Positions 1 through 59,255 of a stretch of DNA of 64,000 nt are shown piece by piece. This DNA is from Epithemia pelagica (lineage: Eukaryota > Protista > Bacillariophyta). Each line of letters begins with the position of its first letter. Position 1 is the first letter of the stretch. Under the pieces are notes generated by a model. The model made no database searches and had not been told where the DNA came from. It was given only the letters and a program-made list of their open reading frames with translations. A program made the position numbers and the translations under genes. The stretch lies in assembly GCA_946965045.2 (NCBI GenBank), contig OX337234.1:806001-870000 (forward strand), written 5' to 3'.

Positions 1-216
1 CTGCTTCTGTCGTTGTCGCTTGCATATTCCATGACTGAATGGGCTTGATGCATGCTCTCACTCTTTCAGGTGCAACGACCAAAAGGTCTTTGCTGTTCAA
101 CGTCAGTCCGTCGTCTCGGCTTTAGTAATCCAACTGTAACTGTGGGCAATGAGATATTCTTGATTGGAGCAAGGACAATGATCAACAGCAAACGTCGGTC
201 ACGCAGTGATCATAAC

Positions 217-1190
217 GATAGCCCAGGTGCGTTGAAGAAAGATAGTCGGTTTGGAAAGTATTACAAAATGAAGTCTGTTGGTCTATACCTGAAGGAGCCC
301 TTCGCAATGTCATGACTCGAGACAGTGTAGACCTTGATTGGGAGAAGAACTATGAAGACCACATATCGAAGCCCGCATGTGATTCCATGGATGGTCCTGC
401 CTAAAAGATAACGAATGATTCTCAAAGTTAATCTGTAGGTTTACCGGACGGTGCCGCAATTAACGCAATGACAAGGGAAGATGTTGACCCGAGGGCTCTG
501 GAATTAGACTGGGACAAGAAATATGAAGCAAAACACTGGAAGAGGAAATCTGTTGGCTTACCCGACGGATGTTGTGATATGAGAGAGCTTGGATTTAGAA
601 CGTCAATTCTAGGCGACAGCGTTGGAGAAAAAGACCAGTGTGCTACAATATTTGGTCAAGTTGGGATGAAAAACGATGAAGAGCTCCTCAAGTTCAGGAA
701 AGATCTAGAGCATGCGAAAAAAACCCAAGTCTGTACTCATGGCAGCGATTTCATCGAAGGCTGAGACACAATAAGATGCTTCAAACAACGGAAAGCCGGA
801 TTGATGGCTGCAAAAGCATCTAAAGGGCAACCCAAAGATGTCAAGCCCTCCGATGGGGAAAATCCGGATTGATGGCAGCGATTGCTGCAAAAAGGTCCCA
901 AAACGACAATGACTCTAACGACTAAGGAGGGAGATCTGGATTGATGGTGGCCATTGCCGTCTTGGTGCCGAAGAATGACACCGCAGATGCTAACAATGAT
1001 GGAGCAGGATTGGTTGGCTGCAAATGCCGCCAGAGCGCCATATCATGAGAGCACCAAGAATGACAAAGCGGGATTGATGGCCGCGATTTCCAACAAGGCA
1101 CCGAAAAATACCAGTAACTCGAATGACAGAGGAGGAAGAGCTGCCTTAGTGGCCACCAAGGGGCCGAAGAATGAAATGTTCCAGTCTTAG
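217..1190 (+). pseudogene. Decayed fragment of a repeat protein (CCDC53/WASHC3-like KYxKM-GLP repeats followed by GLMAAI WH2-like repeats; formin/actin-regulator-like). Present in all 12 units at the same offset.
   Basis: Joining frames across stops and shifts gives ALKKDSRFGKYYKMKSVGL-PEGALRNVMTRD..LDWEKNYE, then DGPA.KDNERFSK..SVGLPDGAAINAMTREDVDPRALELDWDKKYE, then ~7 repeats such as KSVLMAAISSK, KAGLMAAKASK, KSGLMAAIAAK and KAGLMAAISNK. Multiple in-frame stops and frameshifts. Confidence 0.6.
727..1160 (+). repeat. Degenerate ~64-72 bp internal repeat (core GGATTGATGG) encoding GLMAAI-like motifs
   Basis: GGATTGATGG at 798, 866, 938 and 1071, an imperfect copy at 1007, and weaker copies near 727 and 1138. 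Confidence 0.8.
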
Positions 1191-1802
1191 TTAACCAACT
1201 ACTTGGAGAAACTCGTGTTGTAACTCCATCGTTTTGTTCAAAGATAGAGCCACTTGCTATTCACACTATTGTTAGAACTTGACGCAGTAGGCAGTTCCAG
1301 TCAAACTGTGATAGTGGACAGCTACTACCGGCAACAAGAATAGCAACAAGTCGGTCACCATTCGGTCCAACTATAGTGACCTGGGTATGCGTGATTTGCC
1401 GATGCTCATGGCGGACACTCAATCGGCACGTCGTCCACTACGGGGTTGGGCGTCACATTCACCAAGGAAGCAGGGTCAGGAGAAGCCTGGATTGAAGCCG
1501 GACCCCCGAATCGAGGTGCCAGTTCTTCGAGATCGACCCTTCCTTGGCCAAGCTAGGATTCAATCAAGCTACCTAGGTAGTATCCATGCCCAGATAGGGG
1601 GGATTGAGGTCTTTTGATTCCTTCATTACAATCGATTTCAGTGTTTTGAGTACATAGGCCAATTTTATTACCGAAATAGTGGGAACTTGATCTAACGACC
1701 CGGATACGTCGAACCAATTTATCATTTTGCGTTCCAACGGCCACTACATGTAGAGAACTGCAATCTGCATTCTTGCCCTCAGTAGAGAAGCTGCTGCTAC
1801 TA

Positions 1803-3206
1803 CTAGGAACGAATCGATCCACCTCGTCTTGCATAAATGGTAAAGTAACCCTCTGGAATACCATTCTGTTGCTGCTTTGATGATCTCTTGTGGTTATCCA
1901 CTCGCTTTGGAGCTTCTTCGTCGTAGAAGACAACCCGCCTGGGACTCCCGCTGGTCAACGACCCCAAGAAAGGCTCTTCTTCAAATCGGACGAGCTCGCA
2001 TGGACTAAAACAAACAGTTTCCTCAATGCCATAGAGATGTCGAATTCCCATTGATTTCAAAGTAGTGAGACTTACAACAAAGAATGGCTTGTGTTCCCAA
2101 GAGTTTTGGATGAGAAACTCTAAATCTCCATTCACGAGACGAGCGCCCACGACAAGAACGGCATGGTTGGGGTTGAGAAACTGTGCGGACTGTTCCTCAT
2201 GCCACGGCGCGCGAAATAGCAAATCGTCACTGTCGATAAGCTCTTGTGTGACCTTCAATCCCTCAATCATGTATGCACCGTTTGTCTGCAGTGTCTCTGA
2301 GAAAATGTCAAAGAGCGTACGAGCTCTGAGACAGGAAATTGGAATTTTGTGGTTGACTTCTATCTCGGGATTCTGTTCCTGCAGGAGTCTTTTGGCATGA
2401 GGCTCTAAATGGCCACCGTCGCCGCGAAAGATATTGGAAAAGATCTCTTTGGGGGAGAATCTGTTCCGCATGTACCGACACACATTGATGTGTTTGTACT
2501 TTGGCTCTTTCTCCACAACATCATCCGAGGAGCTAGTTCTTTTCTTTACTCGTTGAAGTTCGCCCAAGTAGTAAATGGCGTTCGCCACCACGACAGCGTA
2601 GCAGATCGTTGAGTCTTGTCGCTGGTATCGGAGAAAGGGTTTGACACCTTCATCAAAAAGGGTTACCTTGGTTTCGGATTTTTCGGTACCCCATTCTGGA
2701 TGGCGTTGAAGAAAGTCTGCAAATTTCGAATGACCAGAATCACCAGAGTCTTCTTCGTCGCCTTTCTTCCGGACAAAGGCATCAAGTCTCTTTCCAAATG
2801 CAGACTCGGGATCCATTACAGCGTCGATGAGATTTTGGAATATACAGTTTGGGTCTTTTTGAACTAGTTCAGGCTGCTTCTTGAGCAGGAGGAACGCTGC
2901 CTTGACCTTTTGGATTCCGGTGAGTGTGCTCCATTCATGGCGACTAGCAAGAGAATTCCATTCGACAGCTATAGCGTGAATAGGACGGTCCGATAACTTT
3001 GCTTGGGGAGGTGTACATTTGTTCTGCTGAAAGAGGTCGTGGACCGTCTTTAGTCGAGTCTTTGGAGACTGAATACTTCCCGTCGTCTCTTCTTCCTCGT
3101 CAGCCTCGGTGGACGCCGTTACACTTTGAAGATCGGGAATATCCTCAAACTTGCTCCAGTCCATACTCTCAACAGTCTCGTGATTGTTGATGGCTTCTTG
3201 ACTCAT
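1803..3206 (-). CDS. Papain-fold (clan CA, C1-like) cysteine protease, 467 aa, type A, unit 1
   Basis: Single-exon ORF. Motifs: Q..STICYA (oxyanion Gln plus catalytic Cys), GDGG, NHAVLVVG (catalytic His) and IQNSW (catalytic Asn), in papain order and spacing. Acidic N-terminus with no hydrophobic signal peptide. Confidence 0.88.
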   Translation of the reverse strand: MSQEAINNHETVESMDWSKFEDIPDLQSVTASTEADEEEETTGSIQSPKTRLKTVHDLFQQNKCTPPQAKLSDRPIHAIAVEWNSLASRHEWSTLTGIQKVKAAFLLLKKQPELVQKDPNCIFQNLIDAVMDPESAFGKRLDAFVRKKGDEEDSGDSGHSKFADFLQRHPEWGTEKSETKVTLFDEGVKPFLRYQRQDSTICYAVVVANAIYYLGELQRVKKRTSSSDDVVEKEPKYKHINVCRYMRNRFSPKEIFSNIFRGDGGHLEPHAKRLLQEQNPEIEVNHKIPISCLRARTLFDIFSETLQTNGAYMIEGLKVTQELIDSDDLLFRAPWHEEQSAQFLNPNHAVLVVGARLVNGDLEFLIQNSWEHKPFFVVSLTTLKSMGIRHLYGIEETVCFSPCELVRFEEEPFLGSLTSGSPRRVVFYDEEAPKRVDNHKRSSKQQQNGIPEGYFTIYARRGGSIRS

Positions 3207-3541
3207 TGTGTAATACTTTCGGTCCTGATCAATATATGAAAAGCAAGAACTCAGACCGTGGACAAAGTTCTACCTTAGTTGTCTTCTTGTGATTTTGGGA
3301 CTGTGAGAGGCGTTTCGCAGTTTCGTTTTCGATCGTGGAGGAACACATTGCGCTGCGGGATTAGACTCTCGGAATCGAACGACGTGCAGGCGCGTTTACG
3401 CTCCCCCTTTTGTTGTTGTGAGCCACACAAAACGGCGATCGATTTCCTAGTAAAGGTAGATCCATGGAACGCTAGGCGGACCTGACTGGAATTTTCAAAG
3501 CAATAAAAGGTATACTGTAGCGGTCCATTCCTTTGCTGTTT

Positions 3542-4195
3542 TTATGTTGTTTCCTGTTCTTCTTCTTCTTCTTGTGATTGTTTGCATTGGGCCAGATGCT
3601 CTTGCAACTTCACGAGGCAATTGGCGGCCTGGAGATAGGATTGCAAACACGCACGAGCCTCTTGTTGCGCCCGATGCAATTCCTTGGGTGGCAAAGCTCC
3701 CGCCAACAATTCCAAAGGATCCATCAAGCCATTGGGAGAAAAAGAGGAAGCCAATGACGACGACGACGACACGGGTGGTTGAGACTCGGACTTGGCGGGT
3801 TCTTCCTCTGTTTCAGTCACAACCAACATTATTCCAGGAGTGGTTGTAGTCTTGTGGTCCGTTGTGCCCTTGTTTCGTCGTCGTTGTCGCAATCCTGTTT
3901 GTTCGGTGGGAGCATGGATTCGTCGGCTTGGTTCGCTTCTTCTACTGCTTCTTCACGATGCAAGTCGGGAATGTCACCATCCGTTTTCGTTTGTTTCGTG
4001 GTTCGTTCCGCCTTGGTTACTGTGATTGTGGTTGTTTGAGTGGTGGTCGTTGGTCCAGATCAAGGAGACATGAGTCGTGGTGGTGCCTGGTGCGTCTTGT
4101 TGTGTATTATTCTTGTTGTGATCTGTAGTCGCACATGGAGGCGAGTGGACTTTCCCATCGTACATTGGAAGCGGTGCAGTAGGATTCCATGGCCA
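3542..4195 (-). pseudogene. Frameshifted 3' fragment of the VMA22/CCDC115-like gene. Also at 8482-9135, 13902-14555, 18833-19486, 23773-24426, 28704-29357, 33644-34297, 38582-39235, 43522-44175, 48462-49115 and 53400-54053.
   Basis: Homologous to 58338-59038 from AMESYCTASNVRWES to the stop, but broken into several frames by indels and lacking the 5' coding part. Confidence 0.9.
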
Positions 4196-6742
4196 ATAGT
4201 GCAGTAGCTGTAACCGAGAAAGACAGCACAGGTGTCGTTGATCTCCAAAGTTTTTTTCCCAATGAGCGTCTGTAGCCGACGGAAGTTTGAGTGTGGTGAT
4301 GGCTTATCGACTTGTGCACCCCAAAATACCGTCTTGAAATTCCGGTAATGTTGAGCAGAAAGATGTCAAGCCTGCGACAACACCCACAGTCAACAAGCGA
4401 TTTGACAGGCGTCAAAACACATGAGACAACCGCATCTCCAATGTCGTATAAGACATCCGGGCAAAATAATGCGTCTGGTCATGATCGCCTGTGTTTTGAC
4501 CCTCAAAGCCAACCCGAAATGCCCAGGTATCAAAAGCACTCGGTATCTTTAAATCATGGTTGAAAGCCTTTTTTCTCTTGAACTTCCTGTGGCCTTGTCG
4601 CTCGGGTAGGTGCCAGCTACAGTTAGGACGACAACAGCATGCGGAGAGCTGCAAATGTCCAATACGGTTAGCGTGGAGGCCTCAGAACCATTCTGTGCAC
4701 ACAAAATAGATGGCCTCCCGTTTCAAAATAGTGAAAACCGTCACCTAGAACGATTCTAATATCACAATTCGAAAATCAGCAACACAACCGATTGGAATAC
4801 CGCCTTCGTAGACTTGGCCAAACGCGTAGGGGAGCAAACAAGAGGAGCAAAGCTGCCAAACATTTTGTGGACCCTGATCGTTGCCCTCATCGCTGGATAG
4901 ATGCTTTGAGCAGATCGTGCATCTTTATTTCGGCACTCTGCTGCTTCTGTCGTTGTCGCTTGCATATTCCATGACTGAATGGGCTTGATGCATGCTCTCA
5001 CTCTTTCAGGTGCAACGACCAAAAGGTCTTTGCTGTTCAACGTCAGTCCGTCGTCTCGGCTTTAGTAATCCAACTGTAACTGTGGGCAATGAGATATTCT
5101 TGATTGGAGCAAGGACAATGATCAACAGCAAACGTCGGTCACGCAGTGATCATAACGATAGCCCAGGTGCGTTGAAGAAAGATAGTCGGTTTGGAAAGTA
5201 TTACAAAATGAAGTCTGTTGGTCTATACCTGAAGGAGCCCTTCGCAATGTCATGACTCGAGACAGTGTAGACCTTGATTGGGAGAAGAACTATGAAGACC
5301 ACATATCGAAGCCCGCATGTGATTCCATGGATGGTCCTGCCTAAAAGATAACGAATGATTCTCAAAGTTAATCTGTAGGTTTACCGGACGGTGCCGCAAT
5401 TAACGCAATGACAAGGGAAGATGTTGACCCGAGGGCTCTGGAATTAGACTGGGACAAGAAATATGAAGCAAAACACTGGAAGAGGAAATCTGTTGGCTTA
5501 CCCGACGGATGTTGTGATATGAGAGAGCTTGGATTTAGAACGTCAATTCTAGGCGACAGCGTTGGAGAAAAAGACCAGTGTGCTACAATATTTGGTCAAG
5601 TTGGGATGAAAAACGATGAAGAGCTCCTCAAGTTCAGGAAAGATCTAGAGCATGCGAAAAAAACCCAAGTCTGTACTCATGGCAGCGATTTCATCGAAGG
5701 CTGAGACACAATAAGATGCTTCAAACAACGGAAAGCCGGATTGATGGCTGCAAAAGCATCTAAAGGGCAACCCAAAGATGTCAAGCCCTCCGATGGGGAA
5801 AATCCGGATTGATGGCAGCGATTGCTGCAAAAAGGTCCCAAAACGACAATGACTCTAACGACTAAGGAGGGAGATCTGGATTGATGGTGGCCATTGCCGT
5901 CTTGGTGCCGAAGAATGACACCGCAGATGCTAACAATGATGGAGCAGGATTGGTTGGCTGCAAATGCCGCCAGAGCGCCATATCATGAGAGCACCAAGAA
6001 TGACAAAGCGGGATTGATGGCCGCGATTTCCAACAAGGCACCGAAAAATACCAGTAACTCGAATGACAGAGGAGGAAGAGCTGCCTTAGTGGCCACCAAG
6101 GGGCCGAAGAATGAAATGTTCCAGTCTTAGTTAACCAACTACTTGGAGAAACTCGTGTTGTAACTCCATCGTTTTGTTCAAAGATAGAGCCACTTGCTAT
6201 TCACACTATTGTTAGAACTTGACGCAGTAGGCAGTTCCAGTCAAACTGTGATAGTGGACAGCTACTACCGGCAACAAGAATAGCAACAAGTCGGTCACCA
6301 TTCGGTCCAACTATAGTGACCTGGGTATGCGTGATTTGCCGATGCTCATGGCGGACACTCAATCGGCACGTCGTCCACTACGGGGTTGGGCGTCACATTC
6401 ACCAAGGAAGCAGGGTCAGGAGAAGCCTGGATTGAAGCCGGACCCCCGAATCGAGGTGCCAGTTCTTCGAGATCGACCCTTCCTTGGCCAAGCTAGGATT
6501 CAATCAAGCTACCTAGGTAGTATCCATGCCCAGATAGGGGGGATTGAGGTCTTTTGATTCCTTCATTACAATCGATTTCAGTGTTTTGAGTACATAGGCC
6601 AATTTTATTACCGAAATAGTGGGAACTTGATCTAACGACCCGGATACGTCGAACCAATTTATCATTTTGCGTTCCAACGGCCACTACATGTAGAGAACTG
6701 CAATCTGCATTCTTGCCCTCAGTAGAGAAGCTGCTGCTACTA

Positions 6743-8146
6743 CTAGGAACGAATCGATCCACCTCGTCTTGCATAAATGGTAAAGTAACCCTCTGGAATA
6801 CCATTCTGTTGCTGCTTTGATGATCTCTTGTGGTTATCCACTCGCTTTGGAGCTTCTTCGTCGTAGAAGACAACCCGCCTGGGACTCCCGCTGGTCAACG
6901 ACCCCAAGAAAGGCTCTTCTTCAAATCGGACGAGCTCGCATGGACTAAAACAAACAGTTTCCTCAATGCCATAGAGATGTCGAATTCCCATTGATTTCAA
7001 AGTAGTGAGACTTACAACAAAGAATGGCTTGTGTTCCCAGGAGTTTTGGATGAGAAACTCTAAATCTCCATTCACGAGACGAACGCCCACGACAAGAACG
7101 GCATGGTTGGGGTTGAGAAACTGTGCGGACTGTTCCTCATGCCACGGCGCGCGAAATAGCAAATCGTCACTGTCGATAAGCTCTTGTGTGACCTTCAATC
7201 CCTCAATCATGTATGCACCGTTTGTCTGCAGTGTCTCTGAGAAAAGGTCAAAGAGCGTATGAGCTTTGCCAAGGAAAATTGGAAACTCATGGACGACCTT
7301 TTTGTCGGGATTCTGTTCCTGCAGGAGTCTTTTGGCATGAGGCTCTAAATGGCCACCGTCGCCGCGAAAGATATTGGAAAAGATCTCTTTGGGGGAGAAT
7401 CTGTTCCGCATGTACCGACACACATTGATGTGTTTGTACTTTGGCTCTTTCTCCACAACATCATCCGAGGAGCTAGTTCTTTTCTTTACTCGTTGAAGTT
7501 CGCCCAAGTAGTAAATGGCGTTCGCCACCACGACAGCGTAGCAGATCGTTGAGTCTTGTCGCTGGTATCGGAGAAAGGGTTTGACACCTTCATCAAAAAG
7601 GGTTACCTTGGTTTCGGATTTTTCGGTACCCCATTCTGGATGGCGTTGAAGAAAGTCTGCAAATTTCGAATGACCAGAATCACCAGAGTCTTCTTCGTCG
7701 CCTTTCTTCCGGACAAAGGCATCAAGTCTCTTTCCAAATGCAGACTCGGGATCCATTACAGCGTCGATGAGATTTTGGAATATACAGTTTGGGTCTTTTT
7801 GAACTAGTTCAGGCTGCTTCTTGAGCAGGAGGAACGCTGCCTTGACCTTTTGGATTCCGGTGAGTGTGCTCCATTCATGGCGACTAGCAAGAGAATTCCA
7901 TTCGACAGCTATAGCGTGAATAGGACGGTCCGATAACTTTGCTTGGGGAGGTGTACATTTGTTCTGCTGAAAGAGGTCGTGGACCGTCTTTAGTCGAGTC
8001 TTTGGAGACTGAATACTTCCCGTCGTCTCTTCTTCCTCGTCAGCCTCGGTGGACGCCGTTACACTTTGAAGATCGGGAATATCCTCAAACTTGCTCCAGT
8101 CCATACTCTCAACAGTCTCGTGATTGTTGATGGCTTCTTGACTCAT
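6743..8146 (-). CDS. Papain-fold cysteine protease, 467 aa, type B, unit 2
   Basis: Intact ORF with the same catalytic motifs; carries the PDKKVVHEFPIFLGKAHTLFDL patch. Confidence 0.88.
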   Translation of the reverse strand: MSQEAINNHETVESMDWSKFEDIPDLQSVTASTEADEEEETTGSIQSPKTRLKTVHDLFQQNKCTPPQAKLSDRPIHAIAVEWNSLASRHEWSTLTGIQKVKAAFLLLKKQPELVQKDPNCIFQNLIDAVMDPESAFGKRLDAFVRKKGDEEDSGDSGHSKFADFLQRHPEWGTEKSETKVTLFDEGVKPFLRYQRQDSTICYAVVVANAIYYLGELQRVKKRTSSSDDVVEKEPKYKHINVCRYMRNRFSPKEIFSNIFRGDGGHLEPHAKRLLQEQNPDKKVVHEFPIFLGKAHTLFDLFSETLQTNGAYMIEGLKVTQELIDSDDLLFRAPWHEEQSAQFLNPNHAVLVVGVRLVNGDLEFLIQNSWEHKPFFVVSLTTLKSMGIRHLYGIEETVCFSPCELVRFEEEPFLGSLTSGSPRRVVFYDEEAPKRVDNHKRSSKQQQNGIPEGYFTIYARRGGSIRS

Positions 8147-11100
8147 TGTGTAATACTTTCGGTCCTGATCAATATATGAAAAGCAAGAACTCAGACCGTG
8201 GACAAAGTTCTACCTTAGTTGTCTTCTTGTGATTTTGGGACTGTGAGAGGCGTTTCGCAGTTTCGTTTTCGATCGTGGAGGAACACATTGCGCTGCGGGA
8301 TTAGACTCTCGGAATCGAACGACGTGCAGGCGCGTTTACGCTCCCCCTTTTGTTGTTGTGAGCCACACAAAACGGCGATCGATTTCCTAGTAAAGGTAGA
8401 TCCATGGAACGCTAGGCGGACCTGACTGGAATTTTCAAAGCAATAAAAGGTATACTGTAGCGGTCCATTCCTTTGCTGTTTTTATGTTGTTTCCTGTTCT
8501 TCTTCTTCTTCTTGTGATTGTTTGCATTGGGCCAGATGCTCTTGCAACTTCACGGGGCAATTGGCGGCCTGGAGATAGGATTGCAAACACGCACGAGCCT
8601 CTTGTTGCGCCCGATGCAATTCCTTGGGTGGCAAAGCTCCCGCCAACAATTCCAAAGGATCCATCAAGCCATTGGGAGAAAAAGAGGAAGCCAATGACGA
8701 CGACGACGACACGGGTGGTTGAGACTCGGACTTGGCGGGTTCTTCCTCTGTTTCAGTCACAACCAACATTATTCCAGGAGTGGTTGTAGTCTTGTGGTCC
8801 GTTGTGCCCTTGTTTCGTCGTCGTTGTCGCAATCCTGTTTGTTCGGTGGGAGCATGGATTCGTCGGCTTGGTTCGCTTCTTCTACTGCTTCTTCACGATG
8901 CAAGTCGGGAATGTCACCATCCGTTTTCGTTTGTTTCGTGGTTCGTTCCGCCTTGGTTACTGTGATTGTGGTTGTTTGAGTGGTGGTCGTTGGTCCAGAT
9001 CAAGGAGACATGAGTCGTGGTGGTGCCTGGTGCGTCTTGTTGTGTATTATTCTTGTTGTGATCTGTAGTCGCACATGGAGGCGAGTGGACTTTCCCATCG
9101 TACATTGGAAGCGGTGCAGTAGGATTCCATGGCCAATAGTGCAGTAGCTGTAACCGAGAAAGACGGCACAGGTGTCGTTGATCTCCAAAGTTTTTTTCCC
9201 AATGAGCGTCTGTAGCCGACGGAAGTTTGAGTGTGGTGATGGCTTATCGACTTGTGCACCCCAAAATACCGTCTTGAAATTCCGGTAATGTTGAGCAGAA
9301 AGATGTCAAGCCTGCGACAACACCCACAGTCAACAAGCGATTTGACAGGCGTCAAAACACATGAGACAACCGCATCTCCAATGTCGTATAAGACATCCGG
9401 GCAAAATAATGCGTCTGGTCATGATCGCCTGTGTTTTGACCCTCAAAGCCAACCCGAAATGCCCAGGTATCAAAAGCACTCGGTATCTTTAAATCATGGT
9501 TGAAAGCCTTTTTTCTCTTGAACTTCCTGTGGCCTTGTCGCTCGGGTAGGTGCCAGCTACAGTTAGGACGACAACAGCATGCGGAGAGCTGCAAATGTCC
9601 AATACGGTTAGCGTGGAGGCCTCAGAACCATTCTGTGCACACAAAATAGATGGCCTCCCGTTTCAAAATAGTGAAAACCGTCACCTAGAACGATTCTAAT
9701 ATCACAATTCGAAAATCAGCAACACAACCGATTGGAATACCGCCTTCGTAGACTTGGCCAAACGCGTAGGGGAGCAAACAAGAGGAGCAAAGCTGCCAAA
9801 CATTTTGTGGACCCTGATCGTTGCCCTCATCGCTGGATAGATGCTTTGAGCAGATCGTGCATCTTTATTTCGGCACTCTGCTGCTTCTGTCGTTGTCGCT
9901 TGCATATTCCATGACTGAATGGGCTTGATGCATGCTCTCACTCTTTCAGGTGCAACGACCAAAAGGTCTTTGCTGTTCAACGTCAGTCCGTCGTCTCGGC
10001 TTTAGTAATCCAACTGTAACTGTGGGCAATGAGATATTCTTGATTGGAGCAAGGACAATGATCAACAGCAAACGTCGGTCACGCAGTGATCATAACGATA
10101 GCCCAGGTGCGTTGAAGAAAGATAGTCGGTTTGGAAAGTATTACAAAATGAAGTCTGTTGGTCTATACCTGAAGGAGCCCTTCGCAATGTCATGACTCGA
10201 GACAGTGTAGACCTTGATTGGGAGAAGAACTATGAAGACCACATATCGAAGCCCGCATGTGATTCCATGGATGGTCCTGCCTAAAAGATAACGAATGATT
10301 CTCAAAGTTAATCTGTAGGTTTACCGGACGGTGCCGCAATTAACGCAATGACAAGGGAAGATGTTGACCCGAGGGCTCTGGAATTAGACTGGGACAAGAA
10401 ATATGAAGCAAAACACTGGAAGAGGAAATCTGTTGGCTTACCCGACGGATGTTGTGATATGAGAGAGCTTGGATTTAGAACGTCAATTCTAGGCGACAGC
10501 GTTGGAGAAAAAGACCAGTGTGCTACAATATTTGGTCAAGTTGGGATGAAAAACGATGAAGAGCTCCTCAAGTTCAGGAAAGATCTAGAGCATGCGAAAA
10601 AAACCCAAGTCTGTACTCATGGCAGCGATTTCATCGAAGGCTGAGACACAATAAGATGCTTCAAACAACGGAAAGCCGGATTGATGGCTGCAAAAGCATC
10701 TAAAGGGCAACCCAAAGATGTCAAGCCCTCCGATGGGGAAAATCCGGATTGATGGCAGCGATTGCTGCAAAAAGGTCCCAAAACGACAATGACTCTAACG
10801 ACTAAGGAGGGAGATCTGGATTGATGGTGGCCATTGCCGTCTTGGTGCCGAAGAATGACACCGCAGATGCTAACAATGATGGAGCAGGATTGGTTGGCTG
10901 CAAATGCCGCCAGAGCGCCATATCATGAGAGCACCAAGAATGACAAAGCGGGATTGATGGCCGCGATTTCCAACAAGGCACCGAAAAATACCAGTAACTC
11001 GAATGACAGAGGAGGAAGAGCTGCCTTAGTGGCCACCAAGGGGCCGAAGAATGAAATGTTCCAGTCTTAGTTAACCAACTACTTGGAGAAACTCGTGTTG

Positions 11101-11682: not shown

Positions 11683-13086
11683 CTAGGAACGAATCGATCC
11701 ACCTCGTCTTGCATAAATGGTAAAGTAACCCTCTGGAATACCATTCTGTTGCTGCTTTGATGATCTCTTGTGGTTATCCACTCGCTTTGGAGCTTCTTCG
11801 TCGTAGAAGACAACCCGCCTGGGACTCCCGCTGGTCAACGACCCCAAGAAAGGCTCTTCTTCAAATCGGACGAGCTCGCATGGACTAAAACAAACAGTTT
11901 CCTCAATGCCATAGAGATGTCGAATTCCCATTGATTTCAAAGTAGTGAGACTTACAACAAAGAATGGCTTGTGTTCCCAGGAGTTTTGGATGAGAAACTC
12001 TAAATCTCCATTCACGAGACGAACGCCCACGACAAGAACGGCATGGTTGGGGTTGAGAAACTGTGCGGACTGTTCCTCATGCCACGGCGCGCGAAATAGC
12101 AAATCGTCACTGTCGATAAGCTCTTGTGTGACCTTCAATCCCTCAATCATGTATGCACCGTTTGTCTGCAGTGTCTCTGAGAAAAGGTCAAAGAGCGTAT
12201 GAGCTTTGCCAAGGAAAATTGGAAACTCATGGACGACCTTTTTGTCGGGATTCTGTTCCTGCAGGAGTCTTTTGGCATGAGGCTCTAAATGGCCACCGTC
12301 GCCGCGAAAGATATTGGAAAAGATCTCTTTGGGGGAGAATCTGTTCCGCATGTACCGACACACATTGATGTGTTTGTACTTTGGCTCTTTCTCCACAACA
12401 TCATCCGAGGAGCTAGTTCTTTTCTTTACTCGTTGAAGTTCGCCCAAGTAGTAAATGGCGTTCGCCACCACGACAGCGTAGCAGATCGTTGAGTCTTGTC
12501 GCTGGTATCGGAGAAAGGGTTTGACACCTTCATCAAAAAGGGTTACCTTGGTTTCGGATTTTTCGGTACCCCATTCTGGATGGCGTTGAAGAAAGTCTGC
12601 AAATTTCGAATGACCAGAATCACCAGAGTCTTCTTCGTCGCCTTTCTTCCGGACAAAGGCATCAAGTCTCTTTCCAAATGCAGACTCGGGATCCATTACA
12701 GCGTCGATGAGATTTTGGAATATACAGTTTGGGTCTTTTTGAACTAGTTCAGGCTGCTTCTTGAGCAGGAGGAACGCTGCCTTGACCTTTTGGATTCCGG
12801 TGAGTGTGCTCCATTCATGGCGACTAGCAAGAGAATTCCATTCGACAGCTATAGCGTGAATAGGACGGTCCGATAACTTTGCTTGGGGAGGTGTACATTT
12901 GTTCTGCTGAAAGAGGTCGTGGACCGTCTTTAGTCGAGTCTTTGGAGACTGAATACTTCCCGTCGTCTCTTCTTCCTCGTCAGCCTCGGTGGACGCCGTT
13001 ACACTTTGAAGATCGGGAATATCCTCAAACTTGCTCCAGTCCATACTCTCAACAGTCTCGTGATTGTTGATGGCTTCTTGACTCAT
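11683..13086 (-). CDS. Papain-fold cysteine protease, 467 aa, type B, unit 3
   Basis: Intact ORF with the same protein as unit 2; TIR element 150 bp upstream of the ATG. Confidence 0.88.
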   Translation of the reverse strand: MSQEAINNHETVESMDWSKFEDIPDLQSVTASTEADEEEETTGSIQSPKTRLKTVHDLFQQNKCTPPQAKLSDRPIHAIAVEWNSLASRHEWSTLTGIQKVKAAFLLLKKQPELVQKDPNCIFQNLIDAVMDPESAFGKRLDAFVRKKGDEEDSGDSGHSKFADFLQRHPEWGTEKSETKVTLFDEGVKPFLRYQRQDSTICYAVVVANAIYYLGELQRVKKRTSSSDDVVEKEPKYKHINVCRYMRNRFSPKEIFSNIFRGDGGHLEPHAKRLLQEQNPDKKVVHEFPIFLGKAHTLFDLFSETLQTNGAYMIEGLKVTQELIDSDDLLFRAPWHEEQSAQFLNPNHAVLVVGVRLVNGDLEFLIQNSWEHKPFFVVSLTTLKSMGIRHLYGIEETVCFSPCELVRFEEEPFLGSLTSGSPRRVVFYDEEAPKRVDNHKRSSKQQQNGIPEGYFTIYARRGGSIRS

Positions 13087-13235
13087 TGTGTAATACTTTC
13101 GGTCCTGATCAATATATGAAAAGCAAGAACTCAGACCGTGGACAAAGTTCTACCTTAGTTGTCTTCTTGTGATTTTGGGACTGTGAGAGGCGTTTCGCAG
13201 TTTCGTTTTCGATCGTGGAGGAACACATTGCGCTG

Positions 13236-13712
13236 CTATGGGTCCCAACGCAGTAGAGCCTACGTAATTTTTCCTAGTACATGACGTCACGTTTGGCATC
13301 AAGTTTGTCGCGGTGTATCGTGGCTTCACCATGGCATGCCTTCCGTCAATCTGTTATGGTCCATAACTATCTTCGTTTTCTTATCCCTCGCAAAGATCCG
13401 TTCTATTCGTTCTATTTGTTTGATTGCTACGAGGGATAAGAAAAACTCCTTGTCCTTGTGCCACAAAGCCTGATCGTAAAAGGTCCCCTCGTCGTTGCTC
13501 TCAGAAGCGCAAGGAGCGCGCAACAACACCAATCGAGCGAACCGAGTCCCTAGCGCTAGTGACTAACCTAGATCTACCGTTGTAATAGAAATGGAGAGAT
13601 GAAAATCGTACAGAAAAATCCGCCATGGTCAAATTAGTCTGATGGTAACGTTCATTTGCACCAGTGCAATGGTTGAAATTCCACGTGTAAAGCACGGCGT
13701 TGGGACCCATAG
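13236..13712. mobile_element. Non-autonomous TIR DNA transposon (MITE-like, 477 bp), possibly PIF/Harbinger superfamily
   Basis: Perfect 15-bp TIRs CTATGGGTCCCAACG (13236-13250) and CGTTGGGACCCATAG (13698-13712). CTG is duplicated at 13233-13235 and 13713-13715. The empty site CGCTGCGGGA is present in all other units. Confidence 0.95.
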
Positions 13713-41782: not shown

Positions 41783-43186
41783 CTAGGAACGAATCGATCC
41801 ACCTCGTCTTGCATAAATGGTAAAGTAACCCTCTGGAATACCATTCTGTTGCTGCTTTGATGATCTCTTGTGGTTATCCACTCGCTTTGGAGCTTCTTCG
41901 TCGTAGAAGACAACCCGCCTGGGACTCCCGCTGGTCAACGACCCCAAGAAAGGCTCTTCTTCAAATCGGACGAGCTCGCATGGACTAAAACAAACAGTTT
42001 CCTCAATGCCATAGAGATGTCGAATTCCCATTGATTTCAAAGTAGTGAGACTTACAACAAAGAATGGCTTGTGTTCCCAGGAGTTTTGGATGAGAAACTC
42101 TAAATCTCCATTCACGAGACGAACGCCCACGACAAGAACGGCATGGTTGGGGTTGAGAAACTGTGCGGACTGTTCCTCATGCCACGGCGCGCGAAATAGC
42201 AAATCGTCACTGTCGATAAGCTCTTGTGTGACCTTCAATCCCTCAATCATGTATGCACCGTTTGTCTGCAGTGTCTCTGAGAAAAGGTCAAAGAGCGTAT
42301 GAGCTTTGCCAAGGAAAATTGGAAACTCATGGACGACCTTTTTGTCGGGATTCTGTTCCTGCAGGAGTCTTTTGGCATGAGGCTCTAAATGGCCACCGTC
42401 GCCGCGAAAGATATTGGAAAAGATCTCTTTGGGGGAGAATCTGTTCCGCATGTACCGACACACATTGATGTGTTTGTACTTTGGCTCTTTCTCCACAACA
42501 TCATCCGAGGAGCTAGTTCTTTTCTTTACTCGTTGAAGTTCGCCCAAGTAGTAAATGGCGTTCGCCACCACGACAGCGTAGCAGATCGTTGAGTCTTGTC
42601 GCTGGTATCGGAGAAAGGGTTTGACACCTTCATCAAAAAGGGTTACCTTGGTTTCGGATTTTTCGGTACCCCATTCTGGATGGCGTTGAAGAAAGTCTGC
42701 AAATTTCGAATGACCAGAATCACCAGAGTCTTCTTCGTCGCCTTTCTTCCGGACAAAGGCATCAAGTCTCTTTCCAAATGCAGACTCGGGATCCATTACA
42801 GCGTCGATGAGATTTTGGAATATACAGTTTGGGTCTTTTTGAACTAGTTCAGGCTGCTTCTTGAGCAGGAGGAACGCTGCCTTGACCTTTTGGATTCCGG
42901 TGAGTGTGCTCCATTCATGGCGACTAGCAAGAGAATTCCATTCGACAGCTATAGCGTGAATAGGACGGTCCGATAACTTTGCTTGGGGAGGTGTACATTT
43001 GTTCTGCTGAAAGAGGTCGTGGACCGTCTTTAGTCGAGTCTTTGGAGACTGAATACTTCCCGTCGTCTCTTCTTCCTCGTCAGCCTCGGTGGACGCCGTT
43101 ACACTTTGAAGATCGGGAATATCCTCAAACTTGCTCCAGTCCATACTCTCAACAGTCTCGTGATTGTTGATGGCTTCTTGACTCAT
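41783..43186 (-). CDS. Papain-fold cysteine protease, 467 aa, type B, unit 9
   Basis: Intact ORF with catalytic motifs. Confidence 0.88.
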   Translation of the reverse strand: MSQEAINNHETVESMDWSKFEDIPDLQSVTASTEADEEEETTGSIQSPKTRLKTVHDLFQQNKCTPPQAKLSDRPIHAIAVEWNSLASRHEWSTLTGIQKVKAAFLLLKKQPELVQKDPNCIFQNLIDAVMDPESAFGKRLDAFVRKKGDEEDSGDSGHSKFADFLQRHPEWGTEKSETKVTLFDEGVKPFLRYQRQDSTICYAVVVANAIYYLGELQRVKKRTSSSDDVVEKEPKYKHINVCRYMRNRFSPKEIFSNIFRGDGGHLEPHAKRLLQEQNPDKKVVHEFPIFLGKAHTLFDLFSETLQTNGAYMIEGLKVTQELIDSDDLLFRAPWHEEQSAQFLNPNHAVLVVGVRLVNGDLEFLIQNSWEHKPFFVVSLTTLKSMGIRHLYGIEETVCFSPCELVRFEEEPFLGSLTSGSPRRVVFYDEEAPKRVDNHKRSSKQQQNGIPEGYFTIYARRGGSIRS

Positions 43187-46722: not shown

Positions 46723-48126
46723 CTAGGAACGAATCGATCCACCTCGTCTTGCATAAATGGTAAAGTAACCCTCTGGAATACCATTCTGTTGCTGCTTTGA
46801 TGATCTCTTGTGGTTATCCACTCGCTTTGGAGCTTCTTCGTCGTAGAAGACAACCCGCCTGGGACTCCCGCTGGTCAACGACCCCAAGAAAGGCTCTTCT
46901 TCAAATCGGACGAGCTCGCATGGACTAAAACAAACAGTTTCCTCAATGCCATAGAGATGTCGAATTCCCATTGATTTCAAAGTAGTGAGACTTACAACAA
47001 AGAATGGCTTGTGTTCCCAGGAGTTTTGGATGAGAAACTCTAAATCTCCATTCACGAGACGAACGCCCACGACAAGAACGGCATGGTTGGGGTTGAGAAA
47101 CTGTGCGGACTGTTCCTCATGCCACGGCGCGCGAAATAGCAAATCGTCACTGTCGATAAGCTCTTGTGTGACCTTCAATCCCTCAATCATGTATGCACCG
47201 TTTGTCTGCAGTGTCTCTGAGAAAAGGTCAAAGAGCGTATGAGCTTTGCCAAGGAAAATTGGAAACTCATGGACGACCTTTTTGTCGGGATTCTGTTCCT
47301 GCAGGAGTCTTTTGGCATGAGGCTCTAAATGGCCACCGTCGCCGCGAAAGATATTGGAAAAGATCTCTTTGGGGGAGAATCTGTTCCGCATGTACCGACA
47401 CACATTGATGTGTTTGTACTTTGGCTCTTTCTCCACAACATCATCCGAGGAGCTAGTTCTTTTCTTTACTCGTTGAAGTTCGCCCAAGTAGTAAATGGCG
47501 TTCGCCACCACGACAGCGTAGCAGATCGTTGAGTCTTGTCGCTGGTATCGGAGAAAGGGTTTGACACCTTCATCAAAAAGGGTTACCTTGGTTTCGGATT
47601 TTTCGGTACCCCATTCTGGATGGCGTTGAAGAAAGTCTGCAAATTTCGAATGACCAGAATCACCAGAGTCTTCTTCGTCGCCTTTCTTCCGGACAAAGGC
47701 ATCAAGTCTCTTTCCAAATGCAGACTCGGGATCCATTACAGCGTCGATGAGATTTTGGAATATACAGTTTGGGTCTTTTTGAACTAGTTCAGGCTGCTTC
47801 TTGAGCAGGAGGAACGCTGCCTTGACCTTTTGGATTCCGGTGAGTGTGCTCCATTCATGGCGACTAGCAAGAGAATTCCATTCGACAGCTATAGCGTGAA
47901 TAGGACGGTCCGATAACTTTGCTTGGGGAGGTGTACATTTGTTCTGCTGAAAGAGGTCGTGGACCGTCTTTAGTCGAGTCTTTGGAGACTGAATACTTCC
48001 CGTCGTCTCTTCTTCCTCGTCAGCCTCGGTGGACGCCGTTACACTTTGAAGATCGGGAATATCCTCAAACTTGCTCCAGTCCATACTCTCAACAGTCTCG
48101 TGATTGTTGATGGCTTCTTGACTCAT
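46723..48126 (-). CDS. Papain-fold cysteine protease, 467 aa, type B, unit 10
   Basis: Intact ORF with catalytic motifs. Confidence 0.88.
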   Translation of the reverse strand: MSQEAINNHETVESMDWSKFEDIPDLQSVTASTEADEEEETTGSIQSPKTRLKTVHDLFQQNKCTPPQAKLSDRPIHAIAVEWNSLASRHEWSTLTGIQKVKAAFLLLKKQPELVQKDPNCIFQNLIDAVMDPESAFGKRLDAFVRKKGDEEDSGDSGHSKFADFLQRHPEWGTEKSETKVTLFDEGVKPFLRYQRQDSTICYAVVVANAIYYLGELQRVKKRTSSSDDVVEKEPKYKHINVCRYMRNRFSPKEIFSNIFRGDGGHLEPHAKRLLQEQNPDKKVVHEFPIFLGKAHTLFDLFSETLQTNGAYMIEGLKVTQELIDSDDLLFRAPWHEEQSAQFLNPNHAVLVVGVRLVNGDLEFLIQNSWEHKPFFVVSLTTLKSMGIRHLYGIEETVCFSPCELVRFEEEPFLGSLTSGSPRRVVFYDEEAPKRVDNHKRSSKQQQNGIPEGYFTIYARRGGSIRS

Positions 48127-51662: not shown

Positions 51663-53064
51663 CTAGGAACGAATCGATCCACCTCGTCTTGCATAAATGG
51701 TAAAGTAACACTCTGGAATACCATTCTGTTGCTGCTTTGATGATCTCTTGTGGTTATCCACTCGCTTTGGAGCTTCTTCGTCGTAGAAGACAACCCGCCT
51801 GGGACTCCCGCTGGTCAACGACCCCAAGAAAGGCTCTTCTTCAAATCGGACGAGCTCGCATGGACTAAAACAAACAGTTTCCTCAATGCCATAGAGATGT
51901 CGAATTCCCATTGATTTCAAAGTAGTGAGACTTACAACAAAGAATGGCTTGTGTTCCCAAGAGTTTTGGATGAGAAACTCTAAATCTCCATTCACGAGAC
52001 GAGCGCCCACGACAAGAACGGCATGGTTGGGGTTGAGAAACTGCGGACTGTTCCTCATGCCACGGCGCGCGAAATAGCAAATCGTCACTGTCGATAAGCT
52101 CTTGTGTGACCTTCAATCCCTGAATCATGTATGCACCGTTTGTCTGCAGTGTCTCTGAGAAAATGTCAAAGAGCGTACGAGCTCTGAGACAGGAAATTGG
52201 AATTTTGTGGTTGACTTCTATCTCGGGATTCTGTTCCTGCAGGAGTCTTTTGGCATGAGGCTCTAAATGGCCACCGTCGCCGCGAAAGATATTGGAAAAG
52301 ATCTCTTTGGGGGAGAATCTGTTCCGCATGTACCGACACACATTGATGTGTTTGTACTTTGGCTCTTTCTCCACAACATCATCCGAGGAGCTAGTTCTTT
52401 TCTTTACTCGTTGAAGTTCGCCCAAGTAGTAAATGGCGTTCGCCACCACGACAGCGTAGCAGATCGTTGAGTCTTGTCGCTGGTATCGGAGAAAGGGTTT
52501 GACACCTTCATCAAAAAGGGTTACCTTGGTTTCGGATTTTTCGGTACCCCATTCTGGATGGCGTTGAAGAAAGTCTGCAAATTTCGAATGACCAGAATCA
52601 CCAGAGTCTTCTTCGTCGCCTTTCTTCCGGACAAAGGCATCAAGTCTCTTTCCAAATGCAGACTCGGGATCCATTACAGCGTCGATGAGATTTTGGAATA
52701 TACAGTTTGGGTCTTTTTGAACTAGTTCAGGCTGCTTCTTGAGCAGGAGGAACGCTGCCTTGACCTTTTGGATTCCGGTGAGTGTGCTCCATTCATGGCG
52801 ACTAGCAAGAGAATTCCATTCGACAGCTATAGCGTGAATAGGACGGTCCGATAACTTTGCTTGGGGAGGTGTACATTTGTTCTGCTGAAAGAGGTCGTGG
52901 ACCGTCTTTAGTCGAGTCTTTGGAGACTGAATACTTCCCGTCGTCTCTTCTTCCTCGTCAGCCTCGGTGGACGCCGTTACACTTTGAAGATCGGGAATAT
53001 CCTCAAACTTGCTCCAGTCCATACTCTCAACAGTCTCGTGATTGTTGATGGCTTCTTGACTCAT
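51663..53064 (-). pseudogene. Papain-fold protease, type A, frameshifted, unit 11
   Basis: A 2-bp deletion (CTGTGCGGAC to CTGCGGAC, ~52043) shifts the frame just before NHAVLVVG, removing the catalytic His and Asn. Extra private changes E>Q and G>C. Confidence 0.88.
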
Positions 53065-56600: not shown

Positions 56601-58002
56601 CTAGGAACGAATCGATCCACCTCGTCTTGCATAAATGGTAAAGTAACCCTCTGGAATACCATTCTGTTGCTGCTTTGATGATCTCTTGTGGTTATCCACT
56701 CGCTTTGGAGCTTCTTCGTCGTAGAAGACAACCCGCCTGGGACTCCCGCTGGTCAACGACCCCAAGAAAGGCTCTTCTTCAAATCGGACGAGCTCGCATG
56801 GACTAAAACAAACAGTTTCCTCAATGCCATAGAGATGTCGAATTCCCATTGATTTCAAAGTAGTGAGACTTACAACAAAGAATGGCTTGTGTTCCCAAGA
56901 GTTTTGGATGAGAAACTCTAAATCTCCATTCACGAGACGAGCGCCCACGACAAGAACGGCATGGTTGGGGTTGAGAAACTGCGGACTGTTCCTCATGCCA
57001 CGGCGCGCGAAATAGCAAATCGTCACTGTCGATAAGCTCTTGTGTGACCTTCAATCCCTCAATCATGTATGCACCGTTTGTCTGCAGTGTCTCTGAGAAA
57101 ATGTCAAAGAGCGTACGAGCTCTGAGACAGGAAATTGGAATTTTGTGGTTGACTTCTATCTCGGGATTCTGTTCCTGCAGGAGTCTTTTGGCATGAGGCT
57201 CTAAATGGCCACCGTCGCCGCGAAAGATATTGGAAAAGATCTCTTTGGGGGAGAATCTGTTCCGCATGTACCGACACACATTGATGTGTTTGTACTTTGG
57301 CTCTTTCTCCACAACATCATCCGAGGAGCTAGTTCTTTTCTTTACTCGTTGAAGTTCGCCCAAGTAGTAAATGGCGTTCGCCACCACGACAGCGTAGCAG
57401 ATCGTTGAGTCTTGTCGCTGGTATCGGAGAAAGGGTTTGACACCTTCATCAAAAAGGGTTACCTTGGTTTCGGATTTTTCGGTACCCCATTCTGGATGGC
57501 GTTGAAGAAAGTCTGCAAATTTCGAATGACCAGAATCACCAGAGTCTTCTTCGTCGCCTTTCTTCCGGACAAAGGCATCAAGTCTCTTTCCAAATGCAGA
57601 CTCGGGATCCATTACAGCGTCGATGAGATTTTGGAATATACAGTTTGGGTCTTTTTGAACTAGTTCAGGCTGCTTCTTGAGCAGGAGGAACGCTGCCTTG
57701 ACCTTTTGGATTCCGGTGAGTGTGCTCCATTCATGGCGACTAGCAAGAGAATTCCATTCGACAGCTATTGCGTGAATAGGACGGTCCGATAACTTTGCTT
57801 GGGGAGGTGTACATTTGTTCTGCTGAAAGAGGTCGTGGACCGTCTTTAGTCGAGTCTTTGGAGACTGAATACTTCCCGTCGTCTCTTCTTCCTCGTCAGC
57901 CTCGGTGGACGCCGTTACACTTTGAAGATCGGGAATATCCTCAAACTTGCTCCAGTCCATACTCTCAACAGTCTCGTGATTGTTGATGGCTTCTTGACTC
58001 AT
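56601..58002 (-). pseudogene. Papain-fold protease, type A, frameshifted, unit 12
   Basis: Same 2-bp deletion (~56981) as unit 11. Confidence 0.88.
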
Positions 58003-58337
58003 TGTGTAATACTTTCGGTCCTGATCAATATATGAAAAGCAAGAACTCAGACCGTGGACAAAGTTCTACCTTGGTTGTCTTCTTGTGATTTTGGGACTGT
58101 GAGAGGCGTTTCGCAGTTTCGTTTTCGATCGTGGAGGAACACATTGCGCTGCGGGATTAGACTCTCGGAATCGAACGACGTGCAGGCGCGTTTACGCTCC
58201 CCCTTTTGTTGTTGTGAGCCACACAAAACGGCGATCGATTTCCTAGTAAAGGTAGATCCATGGAACGCTAGGCGGACCTGACTGGAATTTTCAAAGCAAT
58301 AAAAGGTATACTGTAGCGGTCCATTCCTTTGCTGTTT

Positions 58338-59255
58338 TTATGTTGTTTCCTGTTCTTCTTCTTCTTCTTCTTGTGATTGTTTGCATTGGGCCAGATGCTC
58401 TTGCAACTTCACGAGGCAATTGGCGGCCTGGAGATAGGATTGCAAACACGCACGAGCCTCTTGTTGCGCCCGATGCAATTCCTTGGGTGGCAAAGCTCCG
58501 GCCAACAATTCCAAAGGATCCATCAAGCCCGTGGGAGAACAAGAGGATGCCAATGGTGGTTGAGACTTGGACTTGGCTGGTTCTTGCTCTTGTTCAGTCA
58601 CGACCAGCATGGTTCCCGTAGTGGTTGAAGTCTGGTGGTCCGTAGCATCCTTGTTTCGTCGTCGTCGTTGTCGCAATCCTGTTTGTTCGGTAGGGAGCAT
58701 GGATTCGTCGGCTTGGTTCGCTTCGTTTGCTGTTTCTTCAGGATGCAAGTCGGGAATTTCATCATCCCGTTTCGTTGGTTCCGCTGTCGGTTCCGTCTTG
58801 TTGTGACTGTGGTTGTTTGAGTGGTGGTCGTTGGTCCAGACCAAGGAGAGATGAGTCGTCGTGGTGCCGTGTGTTGCTGCCTCTGCGGCGGCGGCGGCGT
58901 CGCGAGTCGTACTCGTTGGGGAGGGTGCTTCTTCTTCTTCTTCTTCTTCTTCTTCTTCTTGAACGTGTACTCGCACATGGGGTTCGAGTGGACTTTCCCA
59001 TCGGACATTGGAAGCGGTACAATAGGATTCCATGGCCACGGGCAATTCCATACTGGCATGTCGATGACGAGCCTTGGTGATATTCCAAAGACAGGCTTTC
59101 CAGTGGAAATGGGCGTGATTCACCAACTCTTGTTGATAGTCGTGCACCAATTGCAACACTTGAATCGAGCTGGAAGGGAGAGGAGGCACGGTCCTCATGG
59201 GTGCCGCCGCAGCGGCTCCCGTTGTAACAGCAATACTTGGGTCGTCCACCACCAT
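58338..59255 (-). CDS. VMA22: V-ATPase assembly factor Vma22/CCDC115-like protein (~305 aa from MVVDDPS)
   Basis: The N-terminal block VLQLVHDYQQELVNHAHFHWKACLWNITKAR and the C-terminal block DPLELLAGALPPKELHRAQQEARACLQSYLQAAN resemble the two conserved CCDC115/Vma22 blocks (..WLSLAKARY.. and DPL.WFG.L.P..LR.AQ..F), separated by a low-complexity linker. Recognised by motif memory, not by a search. ATG 59255 is preferred over the track's GTG at 59603. Confidence 0.72.
   Translation of the reverse strand: MVVDDPSIAVTTGAAAAAPMRTVPPLPSSSIQVLQLVHDYQQELVNHAHFHWKACLWNITKARHRHASMELPVAMESYCTASNVRWESPLEPHVRVHVQEEEEEEEEEEAPSPTSTTRDAAAAAEAATHGTTTTHLSLVWTNDHHSNNHSHNKTEPTAEPTKRDDEIPDLHPEETANEANQADESMLPTEQTGLRQRRRRNKDATDHQTSTTTGTMLVVTEQEQEPAKSKSQPPLASSCSPTGLMDPLELLAGALPPKELHRAQQEARACLQSYLQAANCLVKLQEHLAQCKQSQEEEEEEQETT
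58928..58960. repeat. (CTT)11 microsatellite encoding the poly-Glu tract of the VMA22-like gene
   Basis: Read directly from the sequence; translates on the minus strand as Q followed by 10 E. Confidence 0.95.

Follow-up and report, generated by a model that had tools for sequence, protein, structure and literature searches.

A 64,000-nucleotide stretch of the genome of the diatom Epithemia pelagica (here "the window": positions 806001-870000 of contig C7, the contig carrying the array, in G000, the genome assembly analysed) is filled over most of its length by near-identical tandem repeats, each of which contains a gene, or the remains of a gene, for a papain-like cysteine peptidase homologue. 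We put a probability of about 75% on the reading that this locus is a young or continuously homogenised tandem gene array produced by unequal crossing-over, and neither a mobile element nor a purpose-built system. What carries this reading is the position of the two array edges relative to older duplicates that are still present beside the array.

Structure of the array

Repeats were mapped by self-BLAST of the window and by BLAST of one unit against C7:746-880 kb, a 134-kb stretch in which the window is joined with neighbouring sequence; Tandem Repeats Finder found nothing, the period exceeding its 500-bp limit, and self-BLAST was used in its place. The units lie head-to-tail with a period of 4,940 bp. 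The full array comprises 17 of them (U01-U17) at G000:C7 about 773,740-864,500 and extends leftward beyond the window, the distance from edge to edge amounting to 17.0 periods once two transposon insertions are subtracted. The part inside the window (1-58500) consists of the last 120 bp of U05 (window 1-120) and 12 units, U06-U17, which start at window positions 121, 5061, 10001, 15421, 20352 and 25292 (U06-U11) and 30223, 35161, 40101, 45041, 49981 and 54919 (U12-U17). With U07 (window 5061-10000, unit position 1 being window 5061) taken as the reference, the units show 99.4-100% identity; for the 12 units of the window the overall range is 99.2-100%. Near-identity stops at about window 58,500. 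Neither Rfam nor tRNA scanning gave a match in the unit or in the window.

Each unit has three parts: a decayed formin-like fragment, X, at unit positions 30-1142 on the plus strand; the peptidase gene, P, at 1683-3086 on the minus strand; and a second decayed fragment, Y, at 3330-4940, also on the minus strand (8390-10000 in U07). Y is a decayed copy of a low-complexity open reading frame (ORF) of 421 amino acids that stands at full length immediately to the right of the array (window 58338-59603, minus strand) and represents the parent type of the fragment. The two share 68% amino acid identity, and Y is interrupted by two in-frame TGA codons, both of which are common to all units and to an older copy on the left. 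In the array units Y is itself a hybrid of two older Y repeats.

A sequence-only reading of the window had counted 12 near-identical units with near-identity up to position 58,499, ten of them with an intact protease ORF, and had described stops and frameshifts common to all copies in both flanking fragments. Self-BLAST and unit BLAST confirm the count and the end point agrees with ours; the ten intact ORFs are confirmed as well (the other two copies share a 2-bp frameshift), as is the shared decay of both X and Y. Literature searches returned no paper on this array or on the assembly accession.

Edges of the array and its origin

Two older paralogues of the peptidase gene lie on the same contig to the left of the array, P2 at C7:771841-773250 (74% amino acid identity to the array peptidase) and P3 at C7:753170-754573 (72%); both are older than the array units. 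In a sliding comparison, the left proto-unit (P2 with the DNA around it) shows 57-91% identity to the unit before about unit position 3570 and 100% from there through position 4940, where U01 begins. At the other end, U17 has about 100% identity with the other units as far as unit position 3580; past this point identity is about 90%, where the unit runs into the full-length Y ORF. The right edge therefore falls at unit position 3570-3580 (window 58490-58501). Both edges are found within one 12-bp interval, inside the homology of two older Y copies. Since the two edges share the same phase inside these direct repeats (Y' on the left, Y on the right), unequal crossing-over is indicated.

We propose that an older duplication would have left the order P2 - Y' - X - P - Y, in which Y' and Y, direct repeats with about 90% identity, flank X and P. 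A misaligned exchange between Y' and Y, i.e. non-allelic homologous recombination, would then have set the period of 4,940 bp, subsequent expansion would have brought the unit to 17 copies, and continued exchange among the units would hold them 99.5-100% alike. Traces of still older rounds are visible in a more decayed Y'' to the left of P2 and in P3, 17 kb further left. Searched against the genome, the peptidase, X and Y sequences of the unit turned up in the array and at the parental genes and nowhere else.

Copies of the peptidase gene and the hypervariable patch

The window contains ten intact peptidase ORFs, all on the minus strand, eight of 467 amino acids and two of 464. Those of 467 amino acids are in U06 (1803-3206), U07 (6743-8146, the reference), U08 (11683-13086), U10 (22034-23437), U12 (31905-33308), U13 (36843-38246), U14 (41783-43186) and U15 (46723-48126), the first with a type B patch and the others of type A (see below). 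The two shorter ones, in U09 (17103-18497) and U11 (26974-28368), have the same 9-bp in-frame deletion at unit positions 2975-2983. The remaining copies, in U16 (51666-53064) and U17 (56604-58002), are type B pseudogenes sharing a 2-bp deletion at codon 342, six codons ahead of the catalytic His348; it lies at about window 52042 in U16 and about 56980 in U17, where the remaining ORF has 393 amino acids. Across the whole array, 15 of the 17 copies are intact.

The two types differ in a hypervariable 59-bp patch encoding amino acids 281-301 (window 2306-2364, minus strand, in the type B unit U06). Within it 18 of 59 bases differ between types A and B, giving 12 amino acid changes and one synonymous change, while the rest of the gene has only two further differences. 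Type B is carried by U01-U03, U06, U16 and U17, and these are the only two patch alleles. Type A resembles P2 over most of the patch, so type B must be mostly derived. In the structural model the patch runs from a strand through a loop into the beginning of a helix; nowhere is the family alignment more variable or richer in indels than here, and the ratio of non-synonymous to synonymous substitution rates (dN/dS) in the patch among P, P2 and P3 is 1.1-1.8. No donor or template for type B was found in the whole genome, nor within the 134 kb on either strand, in direct or inverted orientation. Type B may derive from a donor that has since been lost or that sits on the other haplotype, or it may be the outcome of a burst of selected changes.

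The encoded protein and its family

The 467-residue protein starts with an acidic stretch predicted to be disordered (residues 1-50), followed by a family-specific helical domain spanning about residues 55-180 and by a papain-like catalytic domain from about 175 to 400. The AlphaFold2 model (predicted local distance difference test score, pLDDT, of 82; predicted template modelling score, pTM, of 0.80) matched cathepsins S and K in Foldseek with a probability of 1.00 and E ~4e-7. VIA, an independent all-against-all structural search, aligned residues 175-400 with Der f 1 (the best, at Z 13.4 and a root-mean-square deviation of 3.5 over 182 residues), Der p 1, SERA5, and cathepsins B and X, at Z scores of 12-13.4. 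The top 14 rows were enzymes of C1 type or close to it, and UfSP, ZUFSP and bleomycin hydrolase scored below the C1 enzymes. A caspase-like fold, as in the metacaspases (clan CD), was not matched, the fold being that of clan CA. In an alignment of 46 family members, Cys202 is conserved in 46, His348 and Asn/Asp368 in 45 each, and Gln195, at the place of the oxyanion-hole residue, in 43. The modelled helix 202-225 begins at Cys202 and the modelled strand 348-358 begins at His348. In addition, a family profile aligned its own His and Asn motifs to the catalytic His and Asn of cathepsin C (E 0.0018), and a sequence search of the Protein Data Bank yielded only weak cathepsin matches, in the same His/Asn region. 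The protein is a papain-like cysteine peptidase homologue (clan CA, C1-like), as the sequence-only reading had recognised, and it is probably catalytically active. That reading had also called it intracellular; a hydrophobic, signal-peptide-like N-terminus was seen in none of the 46 family members, which bears this out as far as the N-terminus goes, and the enzyme is probably non-secreted and cytosolic.

A word-based protein search reached few relatives: besides the peptidase itself, only P2, an allele of P3 and one environmental protein with 33% identity. It took a full HMMER scan to reach the family, which then comprised 89 cluster representatives (clusters at 50% identity), 52 of them with E<=1e-10. 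The orthologues available for comparison share 33-37% identity. At E 0.01, Pfam assigned no family to the peptidase or to any of the 46 members, Peptidase_C1 (PF00112) likewise staying below its gathering score, and an NCBIfam scan of the peptidase gave no match. Judged by sequence, this is an unannotated protist family, separate from the curated Pfam families. The N-terminal region modelled on its own (residues 45-185, pLDDT 86.5) had no structural match above Z 3.8, and, as modelled, its helical domain is not recognisable as a propeptide, a death-fold or a TIR domain. PADLOC gave 0 matches for the peptidase, a negative that is weak evidence in a eukaryote because PADLOC covers prokaryotic systems only. 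In the ESM Atlas a fucose isomerase ranked first and viral Peptidase_C1 clusters scored 0.91-0.92, all within the tool's own weak range, and we treat this result as a lead only.

Three homologues on environmental eukaryotic contigs adjoin kinesin, phosphodiesterase and TLC-domain genes, and are single copy within 7-31 kb. The sequence-only reading had suggested looking for homologues and for tandem arrays of them in related diatoms; homologues are found in 89 clusters, and the contigs inspected, three out of three, have a single copy. A pattern scan of metagenome contigs for related loci gave 599 pattern matches, of which 0 were confirmed.

Age of the array and exchange among its units

Overall, units differ from each other by 0.06-0.5%, and type A units differ mutually at 3-5 sites per 4,940 bp, while the amplified gene stands at a synonymous divergence (dS) of 0.20-0.24 from P2 and P3. 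The variants are distributed in a mosaic fashion. All four allele combinations are seen at unit sites 1005 and 4105, U03 is mosaic at unit site 2186, and type B units are non-contiguous, falling at both edges (U01-U03, U16 and U17) and at one interior position (U06). The units thus continue to exchange sequence. Recent amplification and concerted evolution leave the same signal in the sequence, and the array is either young or homogenised. The two ages proposed by the sequence-only reading therefore hold in the sense that dS to P2 is about 0.2 while units are 0.06-0.5% apart; its "very recent" amplification is not separable from a homogenised array.

Two transposable elements inserted into single units after the amplification. 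In U08 there is a 475-bp element resembling a miniature inverted-repeat transposable element (MITE; window 13237-13711), whose terminal inverted repeats are 14 bp long and start with TATGGGTCCCAACG and whose target duplication is the 5-bp GCTGC. Other contigs carry at least 10 full-length copies of it, 92-99% identical, and the family thus looks recently active. In U03, left of the window, there is a 6,296-bp long terminal repeat (LTR) retrotransposon (G000:C7:785425-791720) whose 461-bp LTRs differ at one base, with a 5-6-bp target duplication.

Selection before and after amplification

Between P and P2 the coding DNA is 88-91% identical in the core and has only in-frame indels, the non-coding flanks being 57-79% identical with many gaps. 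The view that the passengers had decayed before amplification while the protease frame was kept is upheld by this comparison. In pairwise comparison with P2 and P3, dN/dS comes to 0.68-0.75 for the whole gene; two core segments give 0.31-0.63, and the patch (here amino acids 276-305) and the C-terminal tail reach 0.9-1.9. For the branch that ends in the amplified gene the ratio is 0.65 (Fisher p 0.04), and 0.45 (p ~0.07) when only the core is counted. The peptidase was thus under moderate purifying selection before amplification; the sequence-only reading had put forward dN/dS against an outgroup orthologue as a check, and against the paralogues it amounts to 0.65-0.75 overall and 0.3-0.6 in the core.

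After amplification there is no signal of selection in variant or indel density. Outside the patch, variable sites within the array number 7 per 1,345 coding bp versus 18 per 3,536 non-coding bp, and indel events occur at the same frequency in coding and non-coding DNA. The 2-bp frameshift, which removes His348 and Asn368, sits in two adjacent units, so that a dead copy was itself duplicated, and 15 intact ORFs out of 17 is the chance expectation at 0.1% divergence. We infer that the amplification itself was neutral or nearly neutral. The sequence-only reading had concluded from the two ages that dosage or diversity of the protease was under selection. Unequal crossing-over would amplify whatever lies between the repeats; with plain crossing-over at the edges, equal variant density, a duplicated dead copy and only moderate constraint against the paralogues, this conclusion is not supported, though it keeps a small probability.

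Alternative explanations

One may still consider that the amplification was adaptive, i.e. that selection favoured a high dose or allelic diversity of an intracellular protease (in antiviral defence, in programmed cell death, or as a selfish, toxin-like locus), with the patch tuning the recognition of a target or an inhibitor. We regard this as unlikely. The 15 intact copies with their catalytic residues kept would fit, yet intact ORFs in this number need no selection at so low a divergence, and the equal density of coding and non-coding variants and indels, together with the duplicated frameshift, argues in the other direction. Also in favour is the patch, with its 12 amino acid changes to one synonymous, its dN/dS above 1 and its position in the most variable segment of the family; on the other hand, there are just two patch alleles. 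The repeated duplication of the gene at this locus would fit as well, whereas the homologues on the three other eukaryotic contigs are single copy. Neither PADLOC nor NCBIfam provides a match, the N-terminal domain shows no death-fold, TIR or other signalling fold (best Z 3.8), and the unit includes no partner gene such as an inhibitor or antitoxin, its other ORFs being pseudogene debris. More speculatively, and in our view rather improbably, the array could be a polymorphic locus selected for dosage or diversity of a cytosolic protease, acting for example against diatom viruses or in stress-induced cell death, in which the patch would be a recognition surface under diversifying selection and unequal crossing-over a means of rapid copy-number change. 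Several points do weigh against near-neutral crossing-over as a full account of the locus. Selection tests inside so young an array have very little power. The gene was duplicated at least three times here (P3, P2 and the array), which could hint at a recurrent benefit. Simple neutral exchange does not explain 18 donorless patch changes, nearly all of them non-synonymous, and the patch could reflect diversifying selection. The peptidase gene could also be silent. Finally, the exact number and order of units come from G000 alone, since the contigs of another, draft assembly of this organism are interrupted within the array and have a different second unit from the right.

This draft, ERZ21939226, bears on another possibility, that there are few true copies and that the assembler over-expanded a collapsed or ambiguous repeat. 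One draft contig stops within U02, and a second has its end about 4.4 units in from the right edge. The right contig is identical to G000 through the flank, U17 and part of U16, after which it has an intact type A unit, where G000 has, at that second-from-right position, a frameshifted type B unit. However, the two draft contigs on their own hold about seven units, and the left edge is 100% identical between the assemblies over 21 kb. The G000 units also have specific markers (the MITE-like element of U08, the LTR element of U03, the 9-bp deletion of U09 and U11, the 2-bp deletion of U16 and U17, and mosaic single-nucleotide polymorphisms), which would not come from artificial expansion and so speak against it. 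The existence of a multi-copy array is secure, and an artefact of this kind seems to us very unlikely. Least probable of all, to the point of being hardly credible, is that the unit is a mobile or selfish DNA element, for instance a transposon, a rolling-circle element or an insert of viral origin, which increased its number on the spot and carries a viral-type papain-like protease. The viral Peptidase_C1 clusters among the nearest ESM Atlas matches (0.91-0.92) and the retrotransposons that surround the locus might be read that way, but those scores are in the weak range of the tool, and the unit has no transposase, integrase, reverse transcriptase or replication-protein gene. Furthermore, the array edges are in pre-existing chromosomal homology and not at element termini, unit DNA is nowhere else in the genome except at the parental genes, and the homologues adjoin ordinary eukaryotic genes (kinesin, phosphodiesterase and TLC-domain). 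Thus, it appears that unequal crossing-over within an older duplication, rather than selected amplification, misassembly or transposition, underlies the array.

Parental genes, further paralogues and neighbouring elements

Fragment X (window 5090-6202 in U07, plus strand), which is the same in every unit, corresponds by BLAST and protein alignment to the C-terminal part of a giant formin-like gene, of which it is a copy; this gene lies at C7:726-741 kb, 35-48 kb left of the array's left edge. It consists of five collinear pieces with 76-85% DNA identity to this parent and is heavily deleted, several kb having been lost between the pieces; its protein-level alignment to the parent crosses several stop codons and shifts frame. 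We considered that X might be a processed retrocopy and rejected this, since the parent has a single long open frame across the lost stretches, which are therefore not introns. FH2 and CCDC53 Pfam matches were obtained on the haplotig counterpart of the formin-like gene. The gene itself (C7:726001-741200, plus strand) has open frames of more than 3,422 and of 1,472 amino acids, and a long internal array of repeats of about 135 bp (45 amino acids) with repeated K-Y-W-K-M-K-S-V-G-L-P motifs.

Pfam, NCBIfam and PADLOC scans of the 421-residue Y ORF gave no family match. Its residues 16-40, a stretch of 25, have matches with 86-95% identity at about ten sites scattered over other contigs, and hence a short dispersed repeat may extend into the ORF in its 5' part. 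Just 3' of its stop codon, at about window 58355 (unit position 3436), is a (TTC)n microsatellite that has one extra TTC in the rightmost unit only. Directly to the right of the ORF, outside the array and bordering the locus, lies a copia-type retrotransposon (window 59816-63959, minus strand) with its pol split into two ORFs of 934 and 502 amino acids.

Between P2 and P3, dS is 0.027 in codons 1-120 and 0.15-0.25 elsewhere, a low value that suggests a gene-conversion tract between these two paralogues in codons 1-120. A distant paralogue with 30% identity is found at L006:5212-6171 (G000:C13, minus strand); its open frame stops at the catalytic His motif, which points to a pseudogene or to an intervening intron. 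Draft contig ctg1199l (L002, 177 kb) has a second, non-identical version of P3 with the same neighbours as C7:753170-754573. This is probably the other haplotype, and such a P3 pair would allow the study of allelic differences at the locus.

Significance and comparison with known systems

The array is a clean, fully mapped case of the birth of a gene array, with the older duplicates, the 12-bp crossover interval and the later insertions all legible in the sequence. It further draws attention to a family of papain-like, probably non-secreted enzymes that lacks annotation, is represented by 89 clusters and has a conserved N-terminal helical domain without a fold match; this family merits a family model. 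If the copies are transcribed the array would raise dosage, and if copy number varies among strains and affects fitness, the locus would offer a convenient diatom model of adaptive gene amplification. As a type of structure it is well resolved but ordinary, the patch and the family being the sole points of further interest.

The array peptidase resembles C1 peptidases (cathepsins S, K, B, X and C, and Der f 1/Der p 1) in the two-lobed fold of residues 175-400 (a helical L lobe and a beta-barrel R lobe), in the order Gln...Cys...His...Asn with the Cys at the start of the central helix, and in the H-A-x-L-x-V-G and Q-N-S-W motifs around the catalytic His and Asn. In contrast to them, it falls below all Pfam thresholds, with about 14% identity to solved C1 enzymes, the catalytic Cys is followed by Tyr or Phe instead of Trp, and its N-terminus combines an acidic disordered stretch with a conserved helical domain without fold match. 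Unlike C1A cathepsins, which are secreted or lysosomal zymogens, it has no signal peptide and no recognisable I29-type propeptide. Among non-secreted, cytosolic clan CA enzymes, bleomycin hydrolase/PepC (C1B) and the UFM1- or ubiquitin-specific proteases UfSP and ZUFSP are of similar size and appear in the fold list. UfSP (Z 10.7-11.6) and Gal6 (Z 8.6) rank below the C1A enzymes, and no sequence-level match to them was found. The catalytic order of UfSP is Cys...Asp...His, whereas that of the array family is Cys...His...Asn.

The SERA genes of Plasmodium form a tandem cluster, and the resemblance there is one of both fold (SERA5, Z 12.9) and arrangement, a papain-like domain encoded by head-to-tail paralogues. 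However, the SERA paralogues are old and diverged, are secreted into the parasitophorous vacuole, and in several cases have Ser in place of the catalytic Cys, while the array copies are 99.5-100% identical, keep the Cys and are probably non-secreted. A further parallel is with young arrays formed by unequal crossing-over between flanking direct repeats, a general phenomenon in eukaryotes, with which this one shares a constant period, head-to-tail orientation, two edges at the same phase inside older repeats, mosaic variants among units and edge units that differ the most. Compared with such arrays, the only special points here are the unannotated peptidase that forms the cargo and the patch with its two alleles.

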